A DNA stretch of 63,718 nucleotides, filler included, from Olpidium bornovanus S191 (Eukaryota; Fungi; Olpidiomycota), in the NCBI GenBank assembly GCA_017911155.1. It is 29 parts of 29 records of this genome, joined end to end, with 100 filler letters (N's around TTAATTAATTAA, not from the genome) between each part and the next. Parts side by side here need not be neighbours in the genome. Positions count along the whole stretch, not along the records: positions 18,990 to 21,446 come from JAEFCI010012163.1; 28 more parts are not named here. The stretch is one strand, 5' to 3'. A program made the position numbers and the translations under genes. Shown here one piece after another: positions 18,990 to 21,861 of the stretch (positions are counted from its first letter, which is position 1; each line of letters opens with the position of its first letter). The notes beneath the pieces were generated by a model that had not been told where the DNA came from, did no database searches, and saw nothing but the letters and a program-made list of their open reading frames with translations.

Positions 18990-19805
18990 CCCGGTGGGAC
19001 GTCCAACTCGAATCCATGGGAGCCGATGACCCGCATGATGGTGTACTTGGCGTGGAGCCAATCAAATTTTTTGGAGGGTTGATCTGTGTAACCAGGTGTA
19101 AACCAGACCCGATCACTGACTTGGAACCGTGGGGAATGCTGGCGCGCACGGTTGGCGTGCTCCTCCTGGTGCTGCTGAGCGGAGCCAATCAAACTTTTTG
19201 GAGGGTTGATCTGTGTAACCAGGTGTAAACCAGACCCGATCACTGACTTGGAACCGTGGGGAATGCTGGCGTGCACGGTTGGCGTGCTCCTCCTGGTGCT
19301 GCTGAGCCACAATCTCCTGGTTGGCGTGCTCTGTCGCACCGTCCGTTTCTGGGTGATAAGCTGTGGACAGTCGTCGGTGAATGCCGGTGAGCTCGCATAC
19401 GTGCTTCCACAAGGCATTTACCCATCGGCTCCCACGGTCACTGGTTATAGCCAGACCCCACGGGCCATGGTGGCAGACATAGGTCTGGAAAAAGCACGCG
19501 GCACATCTCGCGGCGACAGGTCATTGGTTGCGTCATACATTGCTCTTTTCCCTAGGCAGTCTCTGATGACCTGACTGCTGCCGTCGGAGTCGGGAAGGTG
19601 GGTGACGAAGTCGATGGAGATCTCCTGCCAGAGGCGCTCCGGGATCGGTAAGGGTTTCAGCAGGGCCATCTTTCTATTGCGCCAGATGGTCGCGTTACCG
19701 CAGACGTCGCAGTTGCGGACAAATTGCCGAACTTGTTGGGATTGGCCAGGCCAAAAGAGCTGGCGGGCGATCAAAGCGAAGGTGTTGTCGCGCCTTTCCC
19801 CCCTT
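18990..19805 (-). mobile_element. Degenerate Ty3/gypsy retrotransposon integrase fragment with internal deletion and tandem duplication
   Basis: FWPGQSQQVRQFVRNCDVC (zinc-binding region), LKPLPIPERLWQEISIDFVTHLP, LSTAYHPETDGATE and FQVSDRVW; frameshifts and stops throughout. Confidence 0.92.
19055..19307. repeat. Tandem duplication of about 127 bp within the integrase remnant
   Basis: Two near-identical copies of ggagccaatcaaa...ctggtgctgctgagc. Confidence 0.9.
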
Positions 19806-20489
19806 TTTCTGTAGAGAATTCACTACAAATATATGGGTTCAGCTAGACGGACGCGGCCTTCGCGCGGCGCTCTCGCCGATGGATGGCCCCTCGCTCTTCT
19901 CCTCCGGTGCCGCTCGCCCAACGGATGGTGCGGCGATGCTATTCCTACCGGTGCCTACGGACAGCGCGGGCGCTCTGACGGGGAGGGTTTCGCGTTTCTA
20001 GCAACGCTCGCGGGAAGGGCAGCCCGTTGGGCTCATAACCTGTTGACTATTATTGTGTAGGAGAGTGCGAGCAAAAGTAAAGTAACGGGTGCGTGCGCCG
20101 GACAGAGGTCACGTGATCTGCGGCTACGGCTATGGCTACGGCGCCACTCAACATCTGATCCGTAGCGCAAAAGAACGACATAAACTAAGACTGCGCAGCG
20201 TTCGGGCGCGCATCGCAACCTTTGTCGAGCGCAGCGTCGGCTGGTTCTCGTCTCGTGTGCCCGCGGCGCGCACACCGCCTCGCTTCAAAGCGCCTTTCTG
20301 TGCGGCGGCTGTGCAGAACTGTCCCATTTCTCGTCCGTCATCGACGCGTCGCGCGGTCGATCGCGTTTTCGCGAGAATAATTTGACGTCCCTGCTCTCTA
20401 AGGCATCACGCAGCGTCCCTTGCGGTTCTGCTCCGCGTTCCCTTGTCCCTTTCCTGTCATTCCCTTTGATTGTGGCCTCGCATCGATCG

Positions 20490-20935
20490 GCCCCGACACC
20501 GGCGCTCGTCATCATCGATGGCGGTAGCCGAGAACAGAGAGATGGAAGTGGTGACGTTATCCTCGTAGTGAGCGGAGCAGGCGCCACCGTGCAAGACGAG
20601 CATTGGGCTGGGTGCCCTTGAGCGTCATCGAGCTGGGTTTTCTTGACAATCATTTCGGTGCGTCCTACTCCCGAACGCGGGAGTCGTCGACAGGCGTGTC
20701 TGTCTCGAACACGGACCGGTCGTCCGAGAGAGCTTTCTTGGCGTACACGGAACGAAGGGGCGCCGGAGAGGATGGTTTTTCGGCTTTTTGGCGAGTTGCC
20801 GACAAACATTGTTGACGGCACGATCTCGCTATAGACGCGGGTCTAGCGGACGCGCCGGGCGATGCGTTGCGCGTACTCCGCCTCGAAGTCCAAGACCAAA
20901 GCTGCGCCGGTCGCGCCGAAGGACGGCGTGGACAC
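20490..20935 (-). pseudogene. guaA: Decayed actinobacterial-type GMP synthase (glutamine amidotransferase domain) fragment
   Basis: From GTG at 20935: [30 protein letters not shown], then across frameshifts LAKKPK, ILSGAPS, SVYAKKALSDDRSVFETDTPV, VDDSRVRE, GRTEMIVKK and HGGACSAHYEDNVTTSISLFSATAIDDDERR. These segments are collinear with the GuaA N-terminal domain. Confidence 0.85.
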
Positions 20936-21861
20936 AGGGGGCCGTTACGTTTTCCGTTTTCCTTTTTCCGTTAGGTGATCCCTTTTTCTTGCCGTGCCCC
21001 GCTCGGAGACGCGGCGATCAAACCTGCCACGCACTCGATGCGACTCTACATCCCCGGACGGCGTGTGCGTCATTCACGGTGCGACTTGGCCTGAAAGTGG
21101 GCTGGGGATAGGGCGCAACGTGGCAGCGAAACGGCGCCAGTTTGAAGCAGTGCGCGGCGGCAGTGTGCTTCGCGGACGGTTCGCGCGTGACCTCGTTGCC
21201 AAGGGGCGGCGACGTGGGACTGTGCGGCGCGCGGTTGATAGGGGGCTTCCATAGCAACGGGGACTGCATCCCTGTCCCCGACGCCCTGCCGTTGCTCGTG
21301 CGATTGACGACTCGCTTTGTAACGGCGTAAAACGGAAATCCTTTCATGTGAGAAGGGAACCAAAAAGGAGAGACTTGTCCAACGGCTTCACTCATTTGAT
21401 TTGCTTTTTCGAGTGGCCGTGACAGTGAGGCACCCCCTCGCTTCCCNNNNNNNNNNNNNNNNNNNNNNNNNNNNNNNNNNNNNNNNNNNNTTAATTAATT
21501 AANNNNNNNNNNNNNNNNNNNNNNNNNNNNNNNNNNNNNNNNNNNNCATGTTGCCCGTCCCCCACCACTGCAAGCGCCGTCGCGGCCGTAGCACCAGCTA
21601 TTGCTCCACCAGCTAAAGCCATACTGCACGGCCGACGCGTTCAGATACTGCAATGGAACAACACCCTCGACTGCGGAGGGGGTTGGGGTAGGATCAGCTG
21701 GAGTTTGAAGTTCCAGTCAAAGCTGGCCCTCTCCTGCGCACGCACCGAACTTCAACGTCTTACCGAGCTCCTCAGGAATGTTGCGTCAACCGTCAAACCA
21801 GAGACGCCTGGAACAATCGCAAAGCGCGCCCGTTCGTTCGCTTTTGTAGGCTCTCAGGTCA

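Follow-up and report, generated by a model that had tools for sequence, protein, structure and literature searches.

A decayed Streptomycetaceae-like guaA 5′ fragment in non-coding DNA linked to a eukaryote-type retroelement remnant

Non-functional bacterial insertions are known from nuclear genomes, for example the Wolbachia-derived insertions of insects and nematodes, and NUMTs and NUPTs are nuclear fossils of organelle origin. Most surveys of bacterium-to-eukaryote transfer have taken in intact, annotation-visible genes only, so the rate at which foreign DNA arrives and dies cannot be measured by them. Here we describe a decayed fragment of a bacterial housekeeping gene that allows such an event to be approached from its remains.

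The window is a 63,718-nt stretch joined from 29 records of the Olpidium bornovanus S191 assembly (GCA_017911155.1). The analyzed piece, positions 18990–21446 (2.4 kb), comes from JAEFCI010012163.1, and the copy of the fossil that it carries is called the window copy. It was compared with contigs from three data sets: a run of organism A (X1, covering 20271–20738), a run of another organism, organism B (X2, covering 20154–20797 and 20832–21381 at ∼95% identity), and a soil metagenome (X3, covering 20195–21436 at ∼93% identity). We read the locus, with a probability of roughly three in four, as an old, non-functional, vertically inherited 5′ fragment of a Streptomycetaceae-like guaA gene lying in non-coding DNA of a soil eukaryote. 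No earlier account of this guaA fossil was found in the literature.

Homology, extent and lesions of the guaA relic

Three-frame translation of the minus strand of 20300–21000 gave GuaA-like peptide stretches that switch frames. The first runs from the GTG at 20935 for 30 residues up to a stop and then for 12 residues more, and its best PDB matches were GMP synthases; those downstream include ..SVYAKKALSDDRSVFETDTPVDDSRVRE.., ..GRTEMIV.. and ..HGGACSAHYEDNVTTSISLFSATAIDDDERR. When the GuaA of Streptomyces sp. L001 was searched against the piece by tblastn, a 54.7-bit HSP was obtained in one frame and a second, colinear HSP in another. With 97 Streptomycetaceae guaA genes in blastn, matches of 216 nt (72% identity) and 164 nt (78%) were obtained, spanning 20689–20898. 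The maxima reached in 300 dinucleotide-preserving shuffles of 20440–20960 were 23.9 bits for protein and 30 bits for DNA, vs. 55.1 and 127 bits for the real sequence. A frameshift-aware protein-to-DNA alignment placed GuaA residues 3–164 (numbering starts two codons before LVVDFG) on 20899→20490, with 75 identities in 138 positions (54%). Similarity to the GuaA N-terminal domain was thus found by tblastn, blastn and the frameshift-aware alignment. Searched one by one, the in-frame pieces of the fossil proved too short to give a Pfam match.

At the 5′ end, an ungapped 73-nt blastn match (20943→20871, 68% identity) extends the homology to a few bases of the leader. Beyond ∼20949 and below ∼20490 there was no similarity to guaA, to the ATP-pyrophosphatase domain or to guaA neighbours, and GuaA residues past ∼165 had no match anywhere in 18990–21446. 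The ATP-pyrophosphatase and dimerisation domains, which follow the amidotransferase domain in the full enzyme, are therefore missing. Because the guaA similarity ends at ∼20490, the relic, 460 bases long, corresponds to roughly the first (5′) third of the gene. The preliminary description had placed a guaA relic with a GTG start on the minus strand at 20490–20935, and these coordinates agree with the alignments.

The fossil has no uninterrupted reading frame. Five frameshifts, one in-frame TAG and an 18-codon gap were needed in the frameshift-aware alignment, and no intron-like interruption was needed to align the fossil with GuaA. The several frameshifts, the lack of an intron and the one or two premature stops described earlier are thus borne out: the TAG at 20845–20843 is in frame, and a second one (20668–20666) appears only if the sequence is read without a shift there. 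At site 20845 the X2 contig and the covering X3 reads, which include soil-bacterial guaA fragments, have C, giving GAG. The 18-codon deletion took with it the catalytic Cys of the Cys-His-Glu triad. In donor guaA this 54-nt gap is flanked by two GTC triplets at a spacing of exactly 54 nt (with CGGTC repeats at these triplets in 11 of the 97 donor genes), so the earlier remark that the Cys was apparently removed through gtc microhomology holds. The features of the piece are collected in Table 1.

Table 1. Coordinates of features in the analyzed piece (positions along the window; –, minus strand;., no strand assigned)
Feature	Position	Strand	Remarks
guaA fossil	20490..20949	–	∼14 nt upstream, GTG start, 12-codon N-terminal extension, glutamine amidotransferase domain to ∼residue 164
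Retained GTG start codon	20933..20935	–	12 codons to the LV(V/L)DF motif, as in Streptomyces sp. L001
In-frame TAG replacing donor GAG (Glu)	20843..20845	–	window copy only
Frameshifted stretch	20778..20796	–	between 4-nt and 2-nt deletions, net –2 codons; both common to X2
One-base insertion (frameshift)	20749..20753, near 20752	–	common to X2
Junction of 54-nt (18-codon) in-frame deletion	20689..20700	–	catalytic Cys motif lost; common to X1 and X2
One-base loss in or next to a Tyr codon (donor TAC, here TA-/TAG)	20659..20668	–	at 20667/20666
Most decayed part (..HG.ACSA.. to ..DDDERR)	20490..20640	–	several small indels; guaA homology stops near 20490
Ty3/gypsy (chromovirus-type) integrase remnant	18990..19795	–	H2C2 zinc finger and start of rve core
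Left flank	19796..20489	.	no recognisable gene; common to relatives' contigs only from 20154/20195 on
Right flank	20950..21446	.	non-coding look; common to relatives, 93–95% identity, many indels

A pyrimidine-rich 14-nt tandem repeat (TTACGTTTTCCGTT / TTCCTTTTTCCGTT) lies on the plus strand at 20945–20972, directly upstream of the leader. It coincides with the 5′ limit of donor homology.

Donor group

Donor loci were fetched with a degenerate DNA pattern for a 10-residue motif of the fossil peptide, in a scan of bacterial and archaeal genomes, one for each species, that yielded at least 120 loci. Among the matches listed, 120 of 120 were guaA of Streptomycetaceae or of actinomycete MAGs, and the genera represented among them were Streptomyces, Kitasatospora, Streptacidiphilus and Streptantibioticus, besides the MAGs; this donor sample is biased toward the motif, because the fetching motif is itself present in the fossil. 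The 97 Streptomycetaceae genes used in blastn also served to polarise substitutions (see below).

A protein panel was drawn from 1.84 billion cluster representatives, searched with a Streptomyces amidotransferase-domain query, and comprised 150 diverse GuaA sequences that are 47–87% identical to the query. These representatives carry no taxon names, and the groups compared are halves of the tree. Panel and tree took in no eukaryotic or fungal GMP synthase; fungal Gua1, from which the preliminary description had distinguished the relic, presumably differs at these motifs.

For comparison with the panel, the fossil peptide was written with an X at each break. All 26 Streptomycetaceae sequences were 52–58% identical to it. 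The 49 further sequences in the actinobacterial half of the tree reached no more than 47%, and the remaining 73 panel sequences no more than 41%. All 26 Streptomycetaceae exceeded all 122 others, also when the motif columns were left out; without these ten columns the means were 51% for Streptomycetaceae vs. 38 and 33%. The best match belonged to Streptomycetaceae in 1000 of 1000 column bootstraps. In the careful maximum likelihood tree (75 rows), the fossil grouped with the 12 Streptomycetaceae (support 90/91). The branch of the fossil is very long (0.95–1.18 changes per column).

Constraining the fossil to the non-actinobacterial half lowered lnL by 22.8 in the careful tree and was not rejected by the AU test (p = 0.19). 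On the quick tree the AU test gave p = 0.55; this value carries no information, since the tree from the constrained search scored better than that from the free search. Streptomycetaceae thus appear to be the closest relatives by every measure, with other placements left formally admissible by the AU test. The earlier assignment to a Streptomyces-type guaA accordingly stands as regards the motif, the bootstraps and the tree, and falls short of formal rejection of a non-actinobacterial placement.

The flanks were also compared with 120 Streptomycetaceae guaA loci by tblastx and blastn. The comparison gave scattered matches of low score, of the kind common with high-G+C sequence, and no synteny was found.

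Related copies, decay and flanking DNA

The X2 and X3 contigs carry the fossil together with its flanks (20154–21446, 93–95% identity). For X2, length differences relative to the window copy were listed in full. Inside the fossil they amount to two single bases, behind 20659 and behind 20712, so the large deletion and the other indels are shared and older than the split; X2 shows no length difference in the frameshifted stretch 20778–20796. The extra base behind 20659 is present in both X1 and X2. The same lesions are thus found in independent data sets and in related organisms. Since relatives carry them, the fossil is not a live contaminant, as had been argued from its ruined state.

The window copy and X2 differ at ∼5% of sites, whether fossil or flank is compared. 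When 24 substitutions between them were polarised against the 97 donor genes, the donor state was held by the window copy in 10 and by X2 in 10, and 4 were ambiguous. This split fits the symmetry expected of two lineages that decay independently from a more guaA-like ancestor. Relative to the donors, the fossil differs at 29% of 293 donor-invariant sites. Identity to the donor is 71, 76 and 59% at codon positions 1, 2 and 3, and the substitutions comprise 44 transitions and 41 transversions; neither measure shows coding constraint. The even divergence, the 10:10 split and the heavy change at all codon positions are those of neutrally evolving DNA. G+C content is 60% in the fossil vs. 70% in the donors. 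From ∼0.32–0.37 substitutions per site to the donor, vs. ∼0.027 per lineage between organisms A and B, we infer an age for the insertion that would be about tenfold that of the divergence between organism B and the window's organism.

Repeat-induced point mutation (RIP), a process of fungi, was considered as a source of the changes and rejected. The tally of C>T and G>A changes proposed in the preliminary description was carried out and gave 17 of each in 85 changes, with no strong excess; because there are just 17 of each, no RIP signature is present.

X1 is identical to the window copy over 377 nt and then differs by six substitutions and two single-base insertions within 82 bp (20648–20729). 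At all eight of these differences X1 has the organism B state, and four of the six substitutions are also the donor state, so that the window copy holds a cluster of derived changes in this interval. A second allele or a paralogue may account for the cluster, as may a conversion tract or an error in the local assembly.

Twelve short X3 contigs match only 20815–20877, the best-conserved core of guaA, at 85–87% identity. They are probably guaA of living soil bacteria rather than of the host's relatives. No metagenome contig matched a 24-mer of the fossil exactly, and none of ten ORFs of the piece had an exact counterpart in a protein collection. A search with a 185-aa frame-2 ORF found no related loci in genome contigs or metagenome contigs, because most of this ORF is out-of-frame junk.

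The piece has a G+C content of ∼58–62%, and its longest ORF is 178 aa. Pfam gave nothing above noise on the flank ORFs, and searches of the piece with Rfam (E ≤ 0.1) and ARAGORN (tRNA) returned no match. A search for transposon-like flanking repeats found short repeats at chance level only, including a 16-nt, 81% inverted pair at 20471/21035.

At the left end of the piece, a Ty3/gypsy integrase remnant is identified by its H2C2 zinc finger and the beginning of an rve core. It is frameshifted, is cut by the left edge of the piece and is without the RT/RNase H expected upstream. Integrase_H2C2 scored 26.1 bits (Pfam cut-off 25.5), homologues of the remnant carry PF17921 and PF00665, and the nearest Atlas clusters are 100% Eukaryota. 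In a relative's contig the order protease-RT-RNaseH-integrase-chromodomain is that of a chromovirus-type Ty3/gypsy element.

Within the remnant, a 127-nt unit is present in 2.0 tandem copies (19054–19307); the copies are 98% identical, so the duplication is recent relative to the decay of the element. The remnant stops abruptly at an A+T-rich stretch with GAATTC (19796–19830), where RT/RNase H would be expected. This stretch may mark where the element was truncated, or it may be an assembly joint.

The interval 19150–20150 is covered by no independent contig, and the joint between retroelement and fossil rests on one short assembled piece. The similarity of X2 and X3 to the window ends at 20154 and 20195, respectively; the junction is therefore putative and may be lineage-specific. 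The gypsy remnant reported earlier on the same contig is thus confirmed as a eukaryotic, chromovirus-type integrase, and the contigs of relatives do not cover its junction with the fossil. It is only by linkage to this remnant, on the same piece, that the host may be called eukaryotic, and the linkage is silent on whether it is fungal.

The right edge of the piece (21352–21446) is identical in the window, in two organism A runs and in one organism B contig, and it differs in a second organism B contig. X1 depth is 58 on this segment and 5 on the fossil. The segment is a candidate for a conserved, repeated or expressed element.

Origin of the relic and comparison with known systems

The favored reading may be set out as follows. 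DNA of a soil Streptomycetaceae-like actinobacterium would long ago have been integrated into a soil eukaryote's nuclear genome, probably by end-joining at a break. The insert would have comprised the last few bases before guaA and about the first 530 bases of the gene, the rest having never been present or having been soon lost. Without function after insertion, it would have decayed at the neutral rate, through substitutions (∼29% of donor-invariant sites), the microhomology-bounded 54-nt deletion, small indels and, as a recent change, the stop. Vertical inheritance would account for relatives that carry the same fossil, the same flanks and most of the same lesions.

Other readings were weighed against this one. 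The relic might be the truncated dead copy of a whole Streptomyces-type guaA that the host lineage once used, or still uses, in which case it would not be the dead-on-arrival transfer of the preliminary description. The bacterial start codon and upstream bases have been kept, the data do not separate the arrival of a whole gene from that of a fragment, and the higher identity at codon positions 1 and 2 than at position 3 could reflect past purifying selection. However, low third-position identity is equally expected if the true donor differed from the donor consensus at synonymous sites, only the 5′ third is present, and no remainder lies within 1.5 kb downstream; we regard a formerly used gene as improbable. 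Much the same low probability is given to an assembly chimera, in which fossil and flanks would come from another organism, such as a bacterium with a decaying genome, and would have been misjoined to the retrotransposon remnant. The unbridged interval, the departure of the relatives' contigs from the window left of 20154/20195 and the shortness of the piece (2.4 kb) are all compatible with a misjoin. But more than 1.6 kb around the fossil is without a recognisable gene or long ORF, unlike bacterial DNA, and ∼29% divergence from any donor together with many indels is a state rarely kept in bacterial genomes. Moreover, the same locus occurs in runs labelled with two different organisms, and X2 depth, ∼240 on the retroelement vs. 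∼25 on the fossil, is what a repeat and a single-copy locus would show within one genome.

Very improbable, finally, is a donor outside Streptomycetaceae whose GuaA shares the conserved N-terminal motifs by chance. The non-significant AU test, the very long branch of the fossil and the fetching of the donor sample with a fossil-derived motif leave some room for it. Against it stand the rank of the 26 Streptomycetaceae above all 122 others, which does not depend on the motif columns, the DNA identity of 72–78%, and an N-terminal extension of equal length with the same GTG start. An inserted and decayed Streptomycetaceae-like fragment remains our preferred account of the locus.

Two extensions of the inserted-fragment reading are more tentative. 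It is doubtful, though somewhat less improbable than the rivals above, that a steady trickle of soil-actinobacterial DNA enters the nuclear genome of this eukaryote lineage and is kept for very long in intergenic DNA. If it does, a frameshift-tolerant intergenic screen would yield a datable record of many insertions. As a weaker variant, the fragment may now lie within a host transcript, if run X1 is RNA.

As for wider meaning, the fossil offers a rare calibration point for the raw uptake rate of foreign DNA, and it shows that a long time after insertion such relics can still be identified and polarised against the donor. There is also a practical warning: when a eukaryotic assembly yields a bacterial-looking match, contamination should not be assumed automatically.

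Compared with GuaA of Streptomycetaceae, the relic is colinear from the GTG start to ∼residue 164, with 52–58% identity in protein and 72–78% in the best-kept part of the DNA. In contrast to that enzyme, it is without the Cys, its frame is broken by a stop and at least five shifts, and it does not amount to a gene. NUMTs and NUPTs resemble it as short, promoterless foreign coding pieces, probably end-joined and then decaying. Its source, however, is an unrelated bacterium with no organelle homology, and its insertion must therefore be far rarer than that of NUMTs and NUPTs. With Wolbachia-type insertions the relic shares the nature of a bacterial housekeeping-gene fragment in eukaryote-type non-coding DNA, neutral decay and vertical inheritance. 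The putative donor is a free-living soil actinobacterium, whereas Wolbachia is a germline endosymbiont, and the fossil is tiny (∼460 bp) and apparently old (∼29% from the donor vs. ∼5% between host lineages). Non-functional bacterial insertions being already known, the novelty here is a datable insert from a free-living actinobacterium.
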